DNA of 64,000 bases, taken from Bugula neritina. Taxonomy: Eukaryota > Animalia > Bryozoa. The stretch lies in contig OZ037773.1 in the NCBI GenBank assembly GCA_964035545.1, forward strand, positions 215,751 through 279,750, given 5' to 3'. The notes under the pieces were generated by a model, which did not search any database, was not told where the DNA came from, and worked only from the letters and a program-made list of their open reading frames with translations. Below, one piece after another: positions 39,813 to 52,231 of this stretch. How positions within the stretch are numbered: position 1 is the first letter of the stretch; each line of letters starts with the position of its first letter. Made by a program: the position numbers and the translations under genes.

Positions 39813-42800
39813 ATGAAACTAAAGAAATTGTACAGAGATGAGTATCGAGATGTAGTAGATTCAATTACCTCTTTCAAGGAGTTACCGTTGGTCATGGATC
39901 ATCTAAAACAAAACTTTTCACAGTAAGTATTCTGTTAAATATTGAACTGTTGTATTTTTAATTTTTCTAGTTCTATAGAGTTGGTGTTACTTTTGCTTTA
40001 GCACAGAACCCCTGAAAGTGAAAACTTAAAAATACTAAGGAAACTGTAAACGTTTCCGTTTTAATTTTATTGTTAATTAATATTTTCACCACTACAAATA
40101 TAATTAACATTATAAGTATAACTTTCGTTTATAAAATTAAGTAATTTAGTATTAGAATGAAACTAGTCACTACAATAAATATAATACCCATACTGAAAGT
40201 AACTATAATAATAAGCCTATGGCCGAGTTAGTAATATGAATATTGAATATGAATATCTGAATATGAATATGGGTTGGATTCAGTCAAAACAATTCCATTA
40301 GTAAATTACTACATTTTAGTTTATGTTGATAGTATTAATTGAATCAGATAAGTCTATTGAACATAACTATAATTTTTGTTGTCAATTGACCATTCAAACT
40401 TGGTAGCTCAATTTGAAAATGGCATTTATGCACTATGGTTATGCTGAGCTTTTACTTTTAGGTTTGAACTTGACATTGATGAATGAAGTAAGGAGTAATG
40501 ATAGCTATAATAATAATAATTTCTGGTGTGCTTATAATTGGATTACATTTATTCCTTGAGTATTTAATGATTCACTATTTATTATTTTATGAATTTCATT
40601 ATGATTGTCTTGGAGCTTCTTAAACTAAAATTGCTCCGACTGTGTAATACTGACTTTATTAGAAATATAATATTGTTGTAGTTTTATGCACTACTCAAGT
40701 GGGGTATTATTGTATACAAGAATTACTGCTGCATGTATTACTACGAGATTGCGAGAGAAGTTGAAGTAGTTGACATTTATAACAGATTTATGTCTAATTA
40801 GCCTAAGTACAAAGAAAATTATCAATGATCATAAAAGTACACATATGGAACAGTTACGCAATATTATCCTAGTCTACATGACAGGTATTCTCCAACTGCG
40901 ACTGGGCCCTGGGAGGGTTGGCTCTGATTGGCCGGTGGGGGTTCTGGTGGTGCTACCATATGGAGTTATAATCTCTTGGAACTTTTATAATGACTTTCAT
41001 AATATAATACAATGTCACGACTTCTACTGCAGGTAGCCTACTTATACATGGGAGGTTTGGGGGTAGGCCTATACCTCCCACAGCCACTACAATATTCATA
41101 TTGACATTACATATATACCCAAGCATCACATTTAAGTTTGATGATTACATTATTGCTATTACTATCACAACCCTTGTAGTTGAGTAATGAAACTATGGTC
41201 ATCCGTATATCTGAAATCATCATGGGAGGAGAAACAGTTAATTTTGGCATTTTTAACTTTGTGTTGTAATATGTGGTTAGACACAAAAGTTTAGAGTGAG
41301 ATGAAGATTTATATGTTGGATTTCAACTGCTTGTATGCTATTCTCAAGACTTTGGTTTGAATTTCTGTAGTATCAATGAAAAGACGCTATGGAGCATTCA
41401 CAATACAAGCTATAAAAACAGGATGAAAAAAAGAACCCCATTATTAAAGTCAGAATCAGCTTTCATCCATGAAATCTATATTCCGTAAGTAGTACCTCTT
41501 TTCTCATAATAAACACTCAGCACACCTGCAACAAGTGGCTTTATGTGTTTCAATTTCTATGGCTTAAATTTTGTCAGGTTATAAGGGCAAAGCCATTTGC
41601 AAAATCAAAATTACTTAATAAATACTTCTGCGGTGCAGCAATACAACTTCCAGGGTCTACGTGCCCTTGTAGCAAAGTAAATTGTTAAATACATTCATCA
41701 GGAGGTAATGGTTATCAGGAAATCTTTAAAAAAAGTGTAAAATTTAAAGTTTTAAATGTAATCAATAAAGTATGGATCCCTTTAGCTAATCTATATATTC
41801 TTGTCATGATTACACATAAAAACTGCAGCAAATGATGTTTATCAGTGTGAAACTTTAAACTGTTTTTATAGGTACTGTGAACAAGCGGCCAAAGATTGCA
41901 CGACTTTGCTGCGAATATCACAGCAGGTATAAGACTATATAATACCAAACTAGTGACAAGTAATATTATATATTGCTAAAAGATATGACAGATAATATTT
42001 TATATGCTACTGAACTATATGGTGCTAGAATTCTACAACTGGTTTCTGTGCCTACCCCTGTCATTGCTGAGTTTGTGCTCTGCAGGTGGACATTTCCCCA
42101 GCTCTGGTTGCTAAGCGACTGCTTGAATACATGCTGACCACCCAGTCAGTAACCACTCAGTCAGTATCCACTCAGTCAGTATCCACTCAGTCAGTATCCA
42201 CTCAGTCAGTATCCACCCAGTCAGTATCCACTCAGCCCGTATCCACTCATCCAGTATCCACCCAGCCAGTATCCACTCATCCAGTATTCACTCAGCCAGT
42301 ATCCACTCAGTCAGTATCCACCCAGCCAGTAGCCACTCATCCAGTATCCACTCAGTCAGTATCCACCCAGTCAGTAACCACTCAGTCAGTATCCACTCAG
42401 TCAGTGTCCACTCAGTCAGTATCCACTCAGCCAGTAACCACTCAGTCAGTATCCACTCGTCTGACTTCTACCAGTCAACTTCTGCACCACCCAGACTTCA
42501 CTGACTGCACAAAAAGTGCTGAACTGCCTGGAACTTCTGCAGTCCAGCAAGAGACGTGTGAAGTCAACACCGCACCTATTAGCTCATTTCCTGTGACCGC
42601 AGAGAAAGAGTTTGACCTGCCAAATGCTACACCATTTCACTCAGTACATCCAATGGTTGATGGTGTACAGGGTGAAGGTCAAAGGGTTGATGGAAGCTCA
42701 GTGTCTTCTTTATGTCTTCTGAACCAGTATCTGTTACTTAATCAGGTTTGTTTGTAGACTATTTCTCAACATGTCAGTTTTGTTGTTAAGTTTTACATCT

Positions 42801-45800
42801 ATATATAAGCATTACCACAGTTACATTTGTCACCATGCCAATGGACTGAGTATATAAGACATATAACTATCATCCAGTAAACTGAAGTTACTTCTTGTAG
42901 CCAGGGATCTTGTTTGGTCACAATAGATCTGCCTCAACCTTCCAGTCCCTCTCAACAAGTGCATACATTTTCTTTGTTTATTGAAACTCTACTATGTCTA
43001 TTTCGTCATACAGATGACTGCTAGTTGGGAGGTGGGGCTAGCATCTACACAGTTGTTATTCACTGCTCAGCTCTCCGTCTATACTGGCAAGCATTGCCAG
43101 AAGTTTGAAGGTGTGTTTATTCTATTGGTTTATACTCTCTATATACTCTCTCTATAAAGTCGTATTTTCTCTCTATACTCTCTCTATATATATACTCTCT
43201 ATACTTTTGTATACTCTCTCTATACTTTCTCTATATACTCTTTCTATATACTCTCTCTCTATATACTCTCTCTATATACTCTCTCTATATACTCTCTCTA
43301 TATACTCTCTCTCTATATACTCTCTCTATATATACTCTCTCTATATATACTCTCTCTATATACACTCTCTATATACTCTCTCTATATACTCTCTCTCTAT
43401 ATACTCTCTCTATACACTCTCTATTTACTCTCTCTATATACTCTCTCTCTATATACTCTCTCTATATACTCTCTCTATATACTCTCTCTATATACTCTCT
43501 CTATATACTCTCTCTATATACTCTCTCTATATACTCTCTCTATATACTCTCTCTCTATATACTTTCTCTATATACTCTCTCTATATACTCTCTCTATACA
43601 CTCTCTCCCCATATACTCTCTCTCTCTATATACTCTCTATATATACTCTCTCTCTATACACTCTCTCTATATACACACTCTCTCTATATACTCTCTCTAT
43701 ATACTCTCTATATATACTCTCTCTATATATACTTTCTATATATATACTCTCTCTATATACTCTCTCTATATACTCTCTCTATATACTCTCTCTATATACT
43801 CTCTCTATATACTCTCTCTATATACTCTCTCTCTATATACTTTCTCTATATACTCTCTCTATATACTCTCTCTATATACTCTCTCCCCATATACTCTCTC
43901 TCTCTATATACTCTCTATATATACTCTCTCTCTATACACTCTCTCTATATACACACTCTCTCTATATACTCTCTCTATATACTCTCTCTATATACTCTCT
44001 CTATATACTCTCTCTATATACTCTCTCTCTATATACTTTCTCTATATACTCTCTCTATATACTCTCTCTATACACTCTCTATATATACTCTCTCTATATA
44101 CTCTCTCTATACACTCTCTATATACTCTCTATATATACTCTCTCTATATATACTTTCTATATATATACTCTCTCTATATACTCTCTATATACTCTCTCTA
44201 TATATACTCTCTATATACACACTCTCTCTATATACTCTCCCTATATACTCTCTCTATATACTCTCTATATATATACTCTCTCTATATACTCTCTCTATAT
44301 ACTCTCTCTCTATATACTCTCTCTATATACTCTCTCTCTATATACTCTCCCTATATACTCTCTATATATACTCTCTCTATATACTCTCTCTCTATACTCT
44401 CTCTATATACTCTCTATATATACTCTCTCTATATACTCTCTCTCTATATACTCTCTCTATATATACTCTCTCTATATACTCCCTCTATATACTCTCTCTA
44501 TATACTCTCTCTATATACTCTCTCTATATATACTCTCTCCATATACTCTCTCTCTATATACTCTCTCTATATACTCTCTCTCTATATACTCTCCCTATAT
44601 ACTCTCTATATATACTCTCTCTATATACTCTCTCTCTCTATACTCTCTCTATATACTCTCTATATATACTCTCTCTATATACTCTCTCTCTATATACTCT
44701 CTCTATATATACTCTCTCTATATACTCCCTCTATATACTCTCTCTATATACTCTCTCTATATACTCTCTCTATATATACTCTCTCTATATACTCTCTCTA
44801 TATACTCTCTCTATATACTCTCTCTCTATATACTTTCTCTATATACTCTCTCTATATACTCTCTCTATATACTCTCTCTCTATATACTTTCTCTATATAC
44901 TCTCCCTATATACTCTCTATATATACTCTCTCTATATACTCTCTCTCTCTATACTCTCTCTATATACTCTCTCTCTATATACTCTCTCTATATATACTCT
45001 CTCTATATACTCCCTCTATATACTCTCTCTATATACTCTCTCTATATACTCTCTCTATATACTCTCTCTATATACTCTCTCTAAATACTCTCTCTATATA
45101 CTCTCTCTATATATACTCTCTATATACTCTCTCTATATACTCTCTCTATATATACTCTCTCTATATACTCTCTCTATATACTCACTCTCTATATACTCTC
45201 TCTATATACTCTCTCTATATACTCTCTCTATATACTCTCTCTATATACTCTCTCTATATACTCTCTCCCTATATACTCTCTATATATACTCTCTCTATAT
45301 ACTCTCTCTCTATATACTCTCTCTATATATACTCTCTCTATATACTCTCTCTATATACTCACTCTATATACTCTCTCCATATACTCTCTCTATATACTCT
45401 CTCTATATACTCTCTCTATATACTCTCTCTATATACTCTCTCTATATACTCTGTCTATACACTCTCCCTATATACTCTCTATATATACTTTCTATATATA
45501 TACTCTCTCTATATACTCTCTATATATACTCTCTCTATATATACTCTCTCTATATATACTTTCTATATATATACTCTCTCTATATACTCTCTATATACTC
45601 TCTCTATATATACTCTCTATATATATACTCTCTCTATATACTCTCTATATACTCTCTATATATACTCTCTATATATATACTCTCTCTATATACTCTCTCT
45701 ATATACTCTCTCTATATATATACTCTTGTATACTTTTTATACTCTTGTATATTTATGATGTTAGGAAGTGGGAGGAGCAAAGCGGCTGCCAAAGAAAAAG

Positions 45801-48800
45801 TTGCAGTGTCTGCCATGATCTCTTTTCTGCCTTCCATCACTGATGACTTGCAGCGTTGTCAAATAGAGTCGCATATCATTGAGGGGCAAAAAAGGTGCCT
45901 GAACTTACATATAATACTACGAATATACGCTACATATACTACATACACTACACATACTACATACACTACATATACTACATACACTACATTATATTACACC
46001 TTACTATACTATATACTATACCATTACTGTTTTATGCTATACTATATACTACACAGTTACTGTGTTATACTATACTATATGTTATACTATATACTACACA
46101 GTTACTGTGTTATACTATACTATATGTTATACTATATACTACACAGTTACTGTATTATACTATACTATATGTTATACTACATACTACACAGTTACTGTGG
46201 TATACTATACTATATGTTATACTACATACTACACAGTTACTGTGTTATACTATACTATATGTTATACTATATACTACACAGTTACTGTGTTATACTATAC
46301 TATATGTTATACTATATATACACAGTTACTGTATTATACTATACTATATGTTATACTACATACTACACAGTTACTGTGTTATACTATACTATATGTTATA
46401 CTACATACTACACAGTTACTGTATTATACTATACTATATGTTATACTATATACTACACAGTTACTGTGTTATACTATACTATATGTTATACTACATACTA
46501 CACAGTTACTGTGTTATACTATACTATATGTTATACTACATACTACACAGTTACTGTATTATACTATACTATATGTTATACTATATACTACACAGTTACT
46601 GTGTTATACTATACTATATGTTATACTACATACTACACAGTTACTGTGTTATACTATACTATATGTTATACTACATACTACACAGTTACTGTATTATACT
46701 ATACTATATGTTATACTATATACTACACAGTTACTGTGTTATACTATACTATATGTTATACTACATACTATACCGTTACTGTGTTATACTATATGTTATA
46801 CTACATACTACACAGTTACTGTGTTATACTATATGTCATACTACATACATTACATTACTGTAATTCTTTTCAGATCTCCTAATACTACTGACTACAGACA
46901 CCCAGCACTGACTGTCACACCTAAGAATACCTCATTTACAGGTGAGACAAGTTTCCTCAGTGCTTCCCTGTACCAGAGGATTCTTTTAGTTTCTGTCTAC
47001 ATGAAGTAGTAGAGATACAATGTCTATACCCCTATACATTGTAGGCAAGAAGGCAATCAATGAGCTCTTAAGAAAGCCACACAATATACCAGACCCTGTG
47101 TTGGCTAAGAATGTAGAGCTCTGTGTAGCTGTTGATGATCAGTATGGTCCAATAGCCATGGCTCTTCACGCCAGTCTGGGCAGTGAATACGAGTTCCTTC
47201 TCTTGCAGCTAGTTAAGAAGCACAAGCTACATTTCAAAGGTAGGCTATTTGTCTGGTCACTCCTGCTCTCTAAATCTGTCACAAAGCTGGTGTGCAGTGG
47301 GACGTTCCGTTTAAAAAATCTCAAGTCTCTGAAAATATCGAGATGTCTATTTCTGCCAGAATTACAGATAAAATGTCTTTTCGTAGTATAGTGGTCTTTG
47401 TTGAGCTTTATTATTGGTATCAACTTTACAAGTAAGGCATCTGCTTATATAATAAGATGATATAGTCTAGACTCTAGAGAATTCTATTGAATTCCACTCT
47501 GTGCACGAATCTTGTGGAACAGGCATTATTTATATATGACAATAAGGACTGACTAAGCATTGCGAAATAATGGGTTGCAATAGACTTGTTTGCCATACTA
47601 TTTATAAGTGTAGGCTAAATAACTAAAGAGTATGATATATATTTTATATATATAATAGTTTATAAAGTATAATTTGTGACAAAATGCTTTCAGTTTGAGT
47701 GACGGCGTTTCATGTCAAATGTTTTGCATCCCCTGTTGACAGATGAGAGCACACTGCGTAGTCAGGGCTATGACAAAACACCGGATATTAAATTAGACGT
47801 TCCTGTCGCAGTGAATGGTCAGGTGATCAACTGGATTGAAAGTAAAGCAATGTTCGGCGACGAAGAAACTCATGCCAGGTACCTGGATGATCAACTTTGG
47901 AGTTACTGGAACAGGTGAAGTAATAGTCATTTTGGGAGTTGTGTCATCAGTTGATTTACCATTTATAGTGTCGTGTAGCAACATACTCATAGTATATTAC
48001 TAGTTATACTATGAGTATGTTACTAGTTATACTATGAGTATATTACTAGTTATACTATGAGTATGTTACTAGTTATACTATGAGTATATTACTAGTTATA
48101 CTATGAGTATATTACTAGTTATACTATGAGTATGTTACTAGTTATACTATAAGTATGTTACTAGTTATACTATGAGTATGTTACTAGTTATACTATGAGT
48201 ATATTACTAGTTATACTATGAGTATATTACTAGTTATACTATGAGTATGTTACTAGTTATACTATGAGTATGTTACTAGTTATACTATGAGTATATTACT
48301 AGTTATACTATGAGTATGTTACTAGTTATACTATGAGTATATTACTAGTTATACTATGAGTATATTACTAGTTATACTATGAGTATGTTACTAGTTATAC
48401 TATGAGTATGTTACTAGTTATACTATGAGTATATTACTAGTTATAATATGAGTATATTACTAGTTATACTATGAGTATATTACTAGTTATAATATGAGTA
48501 TGTTACTAGTTATAATATGAGTATGTTACCAGTTATACTATGAGTATGTTACTAGTTATACTATGAGTATGTTACTAGTTATACTATGAGTATATTACTA
48601 GTTATACTATGAGTATGTTACTAGTTATACTATGAGTATGTTACTAGTTATACTATGAGTATGTTACTAGTTATACTATGAGTATGTTACTAGTTATACT
48701 ATGAGTATGTTACTAGTTATACTATGAGTATATTACTAGTTATACTACGAGTATGTTACCAGTTATACTATGAGTATGTTACTAGTTATACTATGAGTAT

Positions 48801-50095
48801 ATTACTAGTTATACTATGAGTATGTTACTAGTTATACTATGAGTATATTACTAGTTATACTATGAGTATGTTACTAGTTATACTATGAGTATATTACTAG
48901 TTATACTATGAGTATGTTACTAGTTATACTATGAGTATGTTACTAGTTATACTATGAGTATATTACTAGTTATACTATGAGTATGTTACTAGTTATACTA
49001 TGAGTATGTTACTAGTTATACTATGAGTATGTTACTAGTTATACTATGAGTATGTTACTAGTTATACTATGAGTATGTTACTAGTTATACTATGAGTATA
49101 TTACTAGTTATACTATGAGTATGTTACTAGTTATACTATGAGTATATTACTAGTTATACTACGAGTATGTTACCAGTTATACTATGAGTATGTTACTAGT
49201 TATACTATGAGTATATTACTAGTTATACTATGAGTATGTTACTAGTTATACTATGAGTATATTACTAGTTATACTATGAGTATGTTACTAGTTATACTAT
49301 GAGTATATTACTAGTTATACTATGAGTATGTTACTAGTTATACTATGAGTATATTACTAGTTATACTATGAGTATGTTACCAGTTATACTATGAGTATGT
49401 TACTAGTTATACTATGAGTATATTACTAGTTATACTATGAGTATGTTACTAGTTATACTATGAGTATATTACTAGTTATACTATGAGTATATTACTAGTT
49501 ATACTATGAGTATGTTACTAGTTATACTATGAGTATATTACTAGTTATACTATGAGTATGTTACTAGTTATACTATGAGTATATTACTAGTTATACTATG
49601 AGTATATTACTAGTTATACTATGAGTATGTTACTAGTTATACTATGTGTATGATATGGGTAACTTGTAAGTTAGAAGTTTCGATCAACTTCTAACAGGCT
49701 TAACTTCATCTAAAACATTTCATTGATTTATTTTATGATGAATTTTGATAGTTCTGTGTGATGGTCTCTCGTGCATAGTCTTATCACCTTTTCTATAATA
49801 TATAATATCGCCCAATACTCTGACATCTTTTGTTATTTACAATGCTTATATTTTCTATTATTTTATGACATGCCCAGAGCTGATATTTACATGCATTGTA
49901 TTGTGGTATATTTTTCCTGTATTTGCCTTGTACTAGTTTCTGAATAGGTACAATGTGCTCTGTAGGTTTGGACCAGGTATGGTGATATATTGGTTTGGTT
50001 ACGTTACAGAAATGGAAAATATGTCTGAAGGAATCCTATTGGCTCACTCGTTCCCTCATAACCTTGAGACGCTTAATTCCTGCAGCTCCAGCTAA
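39813..50095 (+). CDS. CDIN1: CDAN1-interacting nuclease 1 (C15orf41) ortholog with an inserted TQ-repeat region and dsRNA-binding domain, 576 aa
   Basis: 10 in-phase exons: 39813-39922, 41371-41484, 41872-41926, 42086-42745, 43014-43110, 45765-45894, 46874-46941, 47045-47239, 47743-47914, 49966-50095. Conserved blocks: [31 protein letters not shown]...DDQYGP...[20 protein letters not shown]...[12 protein letters not shown]...[19 protein letters not shown] (PD-(D/E)xK core). Confidence 0.9.
42140..42454 (+). repeat. 15-bp in-frame repeat x21 encoding T[QH][SP]V[ST]
   Basis: ACTCAGTCAGTATCC units within the open exon 42086-42745. Confidence 0.95.
43130..45725. repeat. (CT)n-TATATA compound microsatellite, ~2.6 kb, in the intron splitting the dsRBD
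   Basis: TATATACTCTCTC units; reverse complement of the 6065-7260 family. Confidence 0.97.
46035..46860. repeat. 45-bp minisatellite x~18 in a CDIN1 intron
   Basis: TATACTATACTATATGTTATACTACATACTACACAGTTACTGTGT; contains the hairpin ACACAG-TTA-CTGTGT. Confidence 0.95.
47997..49647. repeat. 23-bp minisatellite, ~1.65 kb (~70 copies), in the last CDIN1 intron
   Basis: ACTAGTTATACTATGAGTAT(G/A)TT in tandem. Confidence 0.97.
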
Positions 50096-51052
50096 GGAAT
50101 TGTGTGGTTTAATTGCATAATTCAGCAAGCATTATATTTTTTTTATTTCTGTATATTGCGTTAGTAATTTTACGAATTTTTATTCTTTTTATCTTCTACA
50201 TTTGGTGTATGTATCTAAAATTTATCAAATAAAGTTTTACTTTTAGAAAAATAAAAAACTGTTTAAGGTTTTCTTAAATACTCTACTTCAGAAATACATA
50301 AAAATATTTGTAACTTTAACAAAAAATTGAGCTCTTTATCACTGCTCAGCAACATAGTTATGTAAATAATAGTTTTACAGTTTACATGCGCTTTCATGTA
50401 ATGAATAAGTTCAAAATATAAAAACATAGAAATGAATGACTTTATATTATATAGGAGTACTTGTTGCTATACAAAGCTCCAGAAGTCTTCAGGTCACAAC
50501 TTCTACATGTATGTATACATTATACAGTGTCCCGTTACAGTTCTGTTGTGGTTGGAGTTGTGACATCATAGCTTTTGAATACATATGAACAGCTTTGTAA
50601 TAGCTGAGAGCTGAATACACGTGTGAGCAACTGGGGACTTATGATTTTAGGGTGAACCTGGTGAGTTGTGCTAACCCTGCATATATAGTGTGTCTAAACA
50701 CCTGCTGTAGCTCATCTGTAGTATTGGTTTAGCTTTGAGAGAAATTATTTTAAGCTAATTTATTTCATTGTTATAAGTGATCCTAGTTTTTTTTAAAACT
50801 TAATTTCTTTCTAACAAATGTCTCCAAAATTTCTGAAAAATGTTTTCTAATATATATAAGTGCATTTTAGGTATTTTAGCGACAATCAGCACCATGCTAT
50901 AGTGGAAATTTTACACATCAAAGTTATGTAAAATATGCATGTTTAAGCATTCTGGTATTTTAAAAATCTGTTTCATCTAATAATATTTTTTGTTCTGTAT
51001 TGAAATCTTTTTATGTTTTAGTAAATGTTGCACAACTCAAATTTCTGTGATA

Positions 51053-52231
51053 ATGAATGATCCATTTCACAGCTTCTGCACCCATGCAATAGTGAAGCTA
51101 GCATGCAAAACAGTGAATGGTAATCGGTGCTTCAGATGTGATTTCCTAGATGAAAGTGGCCAGGTTGCTGATGCTGTTGTCTACGAAGTCAGTGAGAATG
51201 GGGGTTATGTGGAAATGACAGTTAAAAATCTATATGGTCAGCCAAAATATGTAGTTTACGGGAAGTCAAGAGACAGCATGAAGATGAGCTCTGCATTTGA
51301 TTGGACAAATTGTGAAGGGTTTATTCAATGTGGCAGCATATTGGACTCTAACAAACAGCAGCTGGTGAAACTAGAAAACTCGTCCCATGAGTGTAAAGCT
51401 CAAATGCTTTCCCCGCTTTCCTTGAAGCCCATGGTGAGTTTAGAGGTGGAACTTACAGCTGTGAGTGTAAAACTGCTCGAAACTATCAAACAAGATAATT
51501 TTAAGTGCCTGATTGTTGCACTAGCATTAAACTTTGCCTGGGCTCTGGGCTCACTGCCCACAGGAAGGGTACCAGCTGGCAACTTCTTTTACACAGATCT
51601 TAAACCTGCTTCGGTTAGTAACACACCACTAAAAATAGATTCACTAGCTTTGGGATCACCCAGCTCCAAGCTCCCACCTTCTAAACAACAAACTGTTTGT
51701 TCCTTGAGGGAGGAGACAGACTTCTCTCCAGCTAATCCAAAGAGTGGCCTGGGTTTCAGCCAGAACCCCAAACCCCAAGAAACACTATCGGGATTTGAGT
51801 CACAACCAGAATCCGGTTCTGCTCCGAGAACTCCGTTGATGGCTAAAAGTGAGTCAATGCAAGCCAATTCTGTCGCCTGTGAAAGAGTAGAGGCGCTTTC
51901 AGAAGGCACCTACCTTACATTAGATGAAAAGAAGATCATTGGTCACATTGATCGACCAACACCACTTATGGATTTTTACTGTTTACGATATGAATCCAAG
52001 AGAAGCTTGAAATTGTTCAACCAATCTGTTCCGAACTCGTACCGAGCACAGCAGGCATTGATACTAGGACATCCTACAAAAAAGCTGGCAAAGGAAGTAG
52101 CAAAAGTTACTGAGCAATCTGCAAACAAGCCCTGCCCACCCGAAGGATCTCAAACAGACGTGCCTTCCGCTATAAAGACAACTGAAAAGGTGACGCTTGA
52201 AGCAGATGATGGTGATGTGGAAAACTATTGA
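51053..52231 (+). CDS. Uncharacterised protein with a single coding exon (392 aa); the N-terminal beta-rich domain is possibly scramblase/Tubby-C/LURP-like
   Basis: 1.2-kb non-repetitive ORF. It has an acceptor TTTTAG at ~51021 upstream of ATG 51053, a candidate 5'UTR donor GTGAGT at 50661, and AATAAA at ~52398. The fold assignment is inference from a beta-strand pattern ending in the helix KCLIVALALNFAW. Confidence 0.7.
   Translation: MNDPFHSFCTHAIVKLACKTVNGNRCFRCDFLDESGQVADAVVYEVSENGGYVEMTVKNLYGQPKYVVYGKSRDSMKMSSAFDWTNCEGFIQCGSILDSNKQQLVKLENSSHECKAQMLSPLSLKPMVSLEVELTAVSVKLLETIKQDNFKCLIVALALNFAWALGSLPTGRVPAGNFFYTDLKPASVSNTPLKIDSLALGSPSSKLPPSKQQTVCSLREETDFSPANPKSGLGFSQNPKPQETLSGFESQPESGSAPRTPLMAKSESMQANSVACERVEALSEGTYLTLDEKKIIGHIDRPTPLMDFYCLRYESKRSLKLFNQSVPNSYRAQQALILGHPTKKLAKEVAKVTEQSANKPCPPEGSQTDVPSAIKTTEKVTLEADDGDVENY

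Follow-up and report, generated by a model that had tools for sequence, protein, structure and literature searches.

A probable descendant of a double-stranded-RNA-binding domain within a large in-frame insert of the CDIN1 nuclease of Bugula neritina

We analysed a window of 64,000 nucleotides of the bryozoan Bugula neritina (positions 215751-279750 of contig OZ037773.1, in an AT-rich assembly of 216 Mb) and identified in it a gene for the nuclease CDIN1, the product of which carries an insert of about 318 residues between the CDIN1 N-terminal region and the TPD core of the PD-(D/E)xK type. In order, the insert comprises a T-Q-S-V-S repeat of variable length, a fast-evolving linker (about 80 residues), a module some 70 residues long and a further linker. 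This module probably derives from a double-stranded-RNA-binding domain (dsRBD), when the possibilities that it tethers RNA and that it binds protein are taken together. Tentatively, and just short of calling it probable, we favour the narrower reading that the module is a divergent dsRBD descendant acting as an accessory duplex-RNA grip in CDIN1. This architecture of CDIN1 is known from one species complex.

The gene is a single-copy ortholog of CDIN1. The signature of the family, Pfam TPD (PF14811), lies on three colinear exons that together span profile positions 2-135 of 138, with matches at window positions 47092-47238 (28.2 bits), 47739-47915 (90.9 bits) and 49961-50044 (29.9 bits), and the gene model passes the cut-off of this profile. 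The matches correspond to exon 8 (47045..47239, plus strand, as are all exons described here; profile positions 2-50), where the core starts, exon 9 (47743..47914; positions 50-108) and exon 10 (49966..50095; positions 107-135), which holds the end of the TPD domain and the stop codon. The nearest ESM Atlas cluster of the middle TPD exon is 'CDAN1-interacting nuclease 1', and the D-K-T-P-D and E-S-K motifs of the core, both on exon 9 (the latter within W-I-E-S-K-A), are intact; they include the catalytic residues of the PD-(D/E)xK signature. An exon matching Codanin-1_C (PF15296, 51 bits) is present elsewhere in the genome. The complete model has ten exons, encodes 581 residues without stops or frameshifts, and was built on splice signals, reading frame and conservation relative to a contig from a sibling lineage. 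The initial annotation had given a spliced product of 576 residues; the difference in length comes from the uncertain acceptor of the second exon. The sibling contig (L004), a 4.4-kb metagenome contig from the Joint Genome Institute (JGI), was reached by a word search with exon 4, which returned one protein (P0001) representing the same exon; it is syntenic with the window from exon 1 to exon 6 and shares variants with the RNA contigs described below. The N-terminal region is colinear with that of human CDIN1, the end of which corresponds to the first 17 residues of exon 4.

The initial annotation had proposed that this CDIN1 gene reads in frame through about 300 extra residues over four exons, and canonical splice sites, RNA contigs and the length of the human protein (281 residues) bear this out. 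Each of the four insert exons (42086-42745, 43014-43110, 45765-45894 and 46874-46941) is preceded by a polypyrimidine tract with AG and followed by GT, and an open frame connects the conserved CDIN1 residues encoded at 42086-42136 with the TPD exon that starts at 47045. Exon 4 (42086..42745), an open frame of 220 codons, encodes the 17 conserved CDIN1 residues and then the start of the insert, that is, the TQSVS repeats, a linker and, at its end, an amphipathic helix-like segment that is the predicted helix 1 of the dsRBD-like domain (about 42686-42745). Exon 5 (43014..43110) shows the alternating hydrophobic pattern of three strands, also modelled as strands 1-3 by AlphaFold, exon 6 (45765..45894) contains the helix-2 motif followed by linker sequence, and exon 7 (46874..46941) adds 23 linker residues; the latter exon has canonical splice sites and offers the sole frame-keeping path from exon 6, which ends in phase 2, to exon 8, which needs phase 1. 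From exon 1 to exon 10, the exon end phases are 0, 0, 0, 0, 1, 2, 1, 1, 2 and 0. The junctions 42745|43014 (phase 0) and 43110|45765 (phase 1), which assemble the domain, have the phases previously assigned to them. Skipping of one or more insert exons would shift the frame of the nuclease core, the sole exception being the joint loss of 45765-45894 and 46874-46941.

We compared RNA contigs, which are assemblies and as such drop rare isoforms, with the window over positions 41950-43200. Four runs, each from a different study, gave contigs that are 90-95% identical to the window and cover exons only (in exon 4, positions 42082-42190 and 42393-42742). In each run, one contig links 42745 directly to 43014 (GT..AG, with 268 nt skipped), and since this spliced joint is present the contigs must be derived from RNA. 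The same contigs continue past 43110 for 30 letters that correspond to the start of the exon at 45765 apart from 4 substitutions, of which 3 are synonymous, and keep the reading G-S-G-R-S-K-T-A-A-K. Further RNA contigs join the upstream exon end at 41926 to 42086. Those at the 3' side reach 784-849 nt past exon 43014-43110. From that exon to the stop codon, the coding sequence of the model measures 695 nt, to which a short 3' untranslated region would be added, so that the length of the contigs agrees with a transcript continuing through the TPD exons. Neither 45894|46874 nor 46941|47045 was directly seen as a junction; both are backed by the reading frame and by how far the RNA contigs extend. 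The insert exons thus form part of the spliced CDIN1 mRNA, and its open frame requires them. As far as these data go, the insert also seems to be constitutive, since exon skipping breaks the frame and no RNA contig has a joint from the repeat array. A short isoform of canonical size, with the TQ array spliced to the core, was considered and rejected: the array holds 21 GT sites in phase 0 and 14 in phase 2, which do not fit the acceptor at 47045 and its need for phase 1, besides one poor site in phase 1, and such a joint does not occur in the RNA contigs.

The sequence signal of a dsRBD in the module is real, as judged by the following comparisons, but limited to the C-terminal third. The dsRBD C-terminal motif G-x-G-x-S-K-K-x-A-K-x-x-A-A-x-x-A-L is matched by F-E-G-S-G-R-S-K-x-x-A-K...A-x-x-A-M in the module. 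A phmmer search of all PDB sequences gave three matches at E<=10, all of them dsRBDs (ADAR2 with both domains, 0.0047; ADAR2 dsRBM2, 0.53; ILF3, 0.99) and all aligned to the strand3-helix2 motif. A profile built from the C-terminal halves of the genome's own dsRBD exons gave 5.1 bits for the window allele, a value that 8 of 2000 shuffled sequences attained, and 9.9 bits for the sibling allele, which none of 2000 attained; a profile from the MAFFT alignment of all own-genome dsRBD fragments, with the query excluded, gave 10.7 bits (0 of 3000 shuffles reach it). In the reverse direction, a profile of the two alleles was run against 3067 peptides from open reading frames (ORFs), and 4 of the 15 best matches were genuine dsRBD C-half exons, each of them weak singly. 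In the MAFFT alignment, the whole module is colinear with dsRBDs, L-L-N-Q-Y lying under V-L-Q-E-Y and T-A-S-W-E-V under T-A-T-Y-D-V, with the phenylalanine of strand 2 in register and the loop of the module four residues shorter. On sequence grounds, then, the C-terminal strand-helix motif is dsRBD-like.

Supplied with an alignment of the module and 16 dsRBD fragments of this genome, AlphaFold predicted a helix at residues 8-18, strands at 22-30, 35-44 and 47-55, and a helix at 58-73, with a predicted local distance difference test score (pLDDT) of 84.5; all five models agree on this fold (pLDDT 83-84.5). These models indicate that the sequence of the module is compatible with an alpha-beta-beta-beta-alpha fold. 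Among the Foldseek matches listed for this model in the PDB, nearly all are dsRBDs or dsRBD-containing proteins.

We propose that the short stretch connecting the N-terminal helical region of CDIN1 with its TPD core may have expanded into the insert of about 318 residues. The module, held on two flexible tethers, would act as an accessory grip on duplex RNA, and this grip could keep the 3' exonuclease core at a higher local concentration on substrates that contain double-stranded RNA (dsRNA). If the module binds RNA, it probably does so less tightly than canonical dsRBDs, because the loop between strands 1 and 2 (G-P-x-H) is shortened and degenerate. In 2026, human CDIN1-Codanin-1 was reported to act in vitro as an RNA exonuclease with a preference for substrates that contain dsRNA; human CDIN1 needs a free 3' end and becomes a versatile RNA exonuclease together with Codanin-1 (PMC13463051). 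As the human enzyme has this preference, an accessory domain that binds duplex RNA is biologically coherent.

On the other hand, a number of results weigh against an RNA-gripping dsRBD, and some of these suit the strongest alternative, in which the dsRBD fold is accepted but the module belongs to the protein-binding 'type B', serves for dimerisation or for docking to a partner (Codanin-1 or another RNA-processing factor) and makes no contact with RNA. Among the Foldseek matches listed, the highest target template modelling scores (TM-scores, about 0.8) belong to dsRBDs that bind proteins and not RNA, namely, Loquacious dsRBD3, TRBP dsRBD3 in Dicer complexes and Staufen dsRBD5, and further protein-binding domains are listed as well (STAU1 'RBD'5, PACT D3 and DRB7.2:DRB4). 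The first two RNA-contact regions of dsRBDs are not preserved in the module: helix 1 reads L-N-Q-Y in place of L-x-E-Y/F, with a glutamine for the usual glutamate, and the G-P-x-H loop, four residues short, reads G-L-A-S-T-Q in the window allele and thus has neither P nor H. In region 3, K-K-x-A-K is replaced by S-K-A-A-A-K, in which the middle lysine is lost in both alleles. Conservation confined to the C-terminal third is also usual for type B domains. However, two of the three motif lysines, the first and the last, are kept together with an arginine two residues upstream, and P-x-H is present in the loop of the sibling allele; the profile of RNA-contact residues lies between those of the RNA-binding type A and the protein-binding type B. 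Moreover, the action of human CDIN1 on duplex RNA gives an RNA-binding role a ready purpose, and the details of the model depend on a fold that was guided by the alignment. A protein-binding type of dsRBD had been offered as a caveat in the initial annotation; it agrees best with the Foldseek comparison of the model, and overall we consider it rather unlikely.

A second group of results bears on the less likely possibility that the module is not a dsRBD at all, but a fast-evolving lineage-specific spacer that forms a flexible linker or has no role, with a 20-residue G-x-G-x-S-K...A-K...A motif that arose by chance or convergence. A Pfam-A hmmscan of the 101-residue spliced segment returned 0 families at E<=10, dsrm (PF00035) included, and the 20 dsrm candidates from a scan of the genome do not include the exons of the module; a dsRBD profile match, the lack of which the initial annotation had listed against its own call, was thus not obtained in Pfam. 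Shuffling of the N-terminal 35 residues did not lower the profile score, and a small profile of dsRBD N-halves found no signal in the module. From the single sequence, AlphaFold produced an all-helix model of low confidence (pLDDT 56), and the confident fold is not independent evidence, as our own dsRBD alignment steers the prediction and it was made without a control fold. No paralogue of the module was found in a protein search of its own genome, a word search with the exon-6 ORF and a metagenome scan with the exon-4 tail gave no relatives, and phmmer detected no credible relative among 1.84 billion representative proteins. The dsRBD call of the initial annotation therefore holds for the significant C-terminal motif, while the N-terminal half is without signal and the predicted fold, which it had suggested examining with AlphaFold and Foldseek, appears only when a dsRBD alignment is supplied.

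Selection on these exons bears on the same alternative. Between the two lineages, the Nei-Gojobori ratio of nonsynonymous to synonymous rates (dN/dS) is 1.67 in the linker (4 synonymous and 20 nonsynonymous changes) versus 0.33 in the dsRBD-like core (7 synonymous and 8 nonsynonymous changes), the estimate for the core thus being based on 15 substitutions, which limits its weight. The 22 residues that precede the first junction are unchanged, the linker has an in-frame 3-nt deletion in the sibling contig, and the T-Q-S-V-S array, which is in frame in both lineages, comprises 21 units in the window and 10 in the sibling. Small as these counts are, the contrast fits a constrained module beside an unconstrained spacer, and by this measure the module evolves more slowly than the linker, an outcome of the dN/dS comparison that the initial annotation had called for. 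A linker ratio above 1 and a two-fold difference in repeat number are what a spacer would be expected to show. However, three separate tests found the motif match to be significant, the module aligns colinearly with dsRBDs from end to end and shares their hydrophobic periodicity, constraint is stronger in the core than in the linker, and all five alignment-guided models share one fold; we therefore regard a mere spacer as distinctly improbable. Least of all do we favour an artefact, that is, that the exons represent a retained intron, read-through or a non-productive isoform and that functional CDIN1 lacks them: the two downstream junctions were not directly seen, and the assemblies are prone to lose rare isoforms, but the spliced exons are present in the dominant contigs of each of four independent studies, skipping of the insert exons would shift the frame of the core, the array GT sites lie in phases 0 or 2 whereas the core acceptor needs phase 1, and indels between the lineages are in frame, so that this explanation is very improbable.

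Returning to the divergent dsRBD as a grip on duplex RNA, the initial annotation had further seen in the fusion a clue to the substrate of CDIN1. The idea is biologically coherent, but it has been overtaken by the human CDIN1-Codanin-1 result cited above: as the class of substrate is already known from experiment, the fusion corroborates the substrate and does not reveal it. The stronger claim, that a working duplex-RNA-binding domain was recruited into CDIN1 and points to duplex or structured RNA as the physiological substrate across animals, is possible but on the doubtful side. If it were true, the gene would be a 'Rosetta stone' fusion for the RNA substrate of CDIN1-Codanin-1, independent of the human biochemistry, and pull-down with the domain would provide a handle for finding that RNA. 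A dsRBD-like module tethered to the CDIN1 core would also be independent comparative support for an RNA-duplex substrate, and would offer a natural experiment in which the effect of such an added domain on the enzyme can be followed. The value of the case is limited in that the domain assignment is only partly proven, the architecture comes from a single complex of species and an RNA substrate has already been put forward in print.

In another dsRBD gene of the genome (L008, G000:C1:7256400-7259900, about 400-815), a phase-1 intron interrupts a glycine codon that precedes G-x-G by two residues. In the CDIN1 module, the phase-1 intron at 43110|45765 lies in the first glycine of G-x-G, a position near, not identical to, that in the other gene. 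These intron positions hint at an origin of the module by exon shuffling. In a separate matter, the phmmer search with the module returned five matches at E<=0.001 (down to 1e-7), all of them bacterial Calx-beta multi-repeat proteins, the scores of which were summed over 3-15 stretches, one with 25% identity over 63 residues. We took them as spurious and rejected a relation to Calx-beta because these are compositional matches inflated by repeats, the module is too short for the sandwich and the Pfam Calx-beta family gave no match. The case illustrates that repeat proteins can inflate whole-sequence E-values, since a short T/S/A-rich eukaryotic query matched only Calx-beta repeats.

The gene starts with exon 1 (39813..39923), an ATG-led ORF that encodes the N-terminal region, ends in CAG|GTAAGT and differs from the sibling contig by an in-frame 6-nt indel. 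Exon 2 (41384..41485) has a strong donor (CCG|GTAAGT) and is about 95% identical to the sibling contig versus about 78% in its surroundings. Its acceptor is uncertain, as the strong site at 41371 breaks the frame with exon 1, whereas the weak site at 41384 keeps it; alternatively, an unseen small exon may lie between 39923 and 41371. Exon 3 (41846..41926), likewise with an in-frame 6-nt indel in the sibling contig, is the one whose 3' end is joined to 42086 in the RNA contigs. Intron 1 diverges between the lineages at 7.5% of sites. The four RNA runs, which bear the same organism label as a near-identical DNA run, depart from the window at roughly 8% of the sites in exons and match the sibling contig, which suggests, on the basis of these comparisons, that two deeply divergent lineages are covered by one species name.

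Tandem repeats occur in both coding and intronic parts of the gene. The coding array of exon 4 is a 15-nt minisatellite at 42138..42458 on the plus strand, encoding 21 units of T-Q-S/P-V-S/T (Tandem Repeats Finder, TRF: period 15, 21.4 copies). The domain itself is split by an intronic 13-nt microsatellite of about 189 units at 43168..45718 (TRF; no strand assigned), in agreement with the microsatellite intron that the initial annotation had placed inside the domain. Every long intron of the gene contains a large minisatellite of its own, the others lying at 46033-46833 (45 nt, about 18 units) and 47983-49652 (23 nt, about 73 units). Such intron arrays change in length quickly, since the first of them spans 2.55 kb in the window and about 0.7 kb in the sibling contig. 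About 900 nt downstream of the CDIN1 stop codon and on the same strand, an uninterrupted ORF of 413 residues extends over 50990-52231.

Compared with known systems, the gene shares with human CDIN1 (C15orf41) the same TPD / PD-(D/E)xK core with D-K-T-P-D and E-S-K, and Codanin-1 is present in the genome of B. neritina. However, human CDIN1 is a compact protein of 281 residues, nearly all of them well ordered (PMC13370696), whereas that of B. neritina has about 581, the inserted residues forming the repeat array, the two linkers and the dsRBD-like module. The predicted arrangement resembles RNase III, Drosha, Dicer and ADAR in that a catalytic core acting on duplex RNA would be tethered to a small alpha-beta-beta-beta-alpha module, and the closest sequence matches of the module are ADAR2 dsRBM1/2. 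It differs from these enzymes in that the catalytic fold is PD-(D/E)xK and not that of RNase III or a deaminase, in that the module is internal and not terminal, and in that the module, unlike their dsRBDs, fails the Pfam dsrm profile and lacks the canonical G-P-x-H loop. With the type B dsRBDs of TRBP, Loquacious (dsRBD3), PACT (D3) and Staufen (dsRBD5), the module has in common that conservation is restricted to the C-terminal third and that RNA-contact regions 1 and 2 are degenerate. However, those domains are located C-terminally in proteins with multiple dsRBDs and bind Dicer, Miranda or themselves, whereas the module of B. neritina is present as a single copy inside a nuclease.

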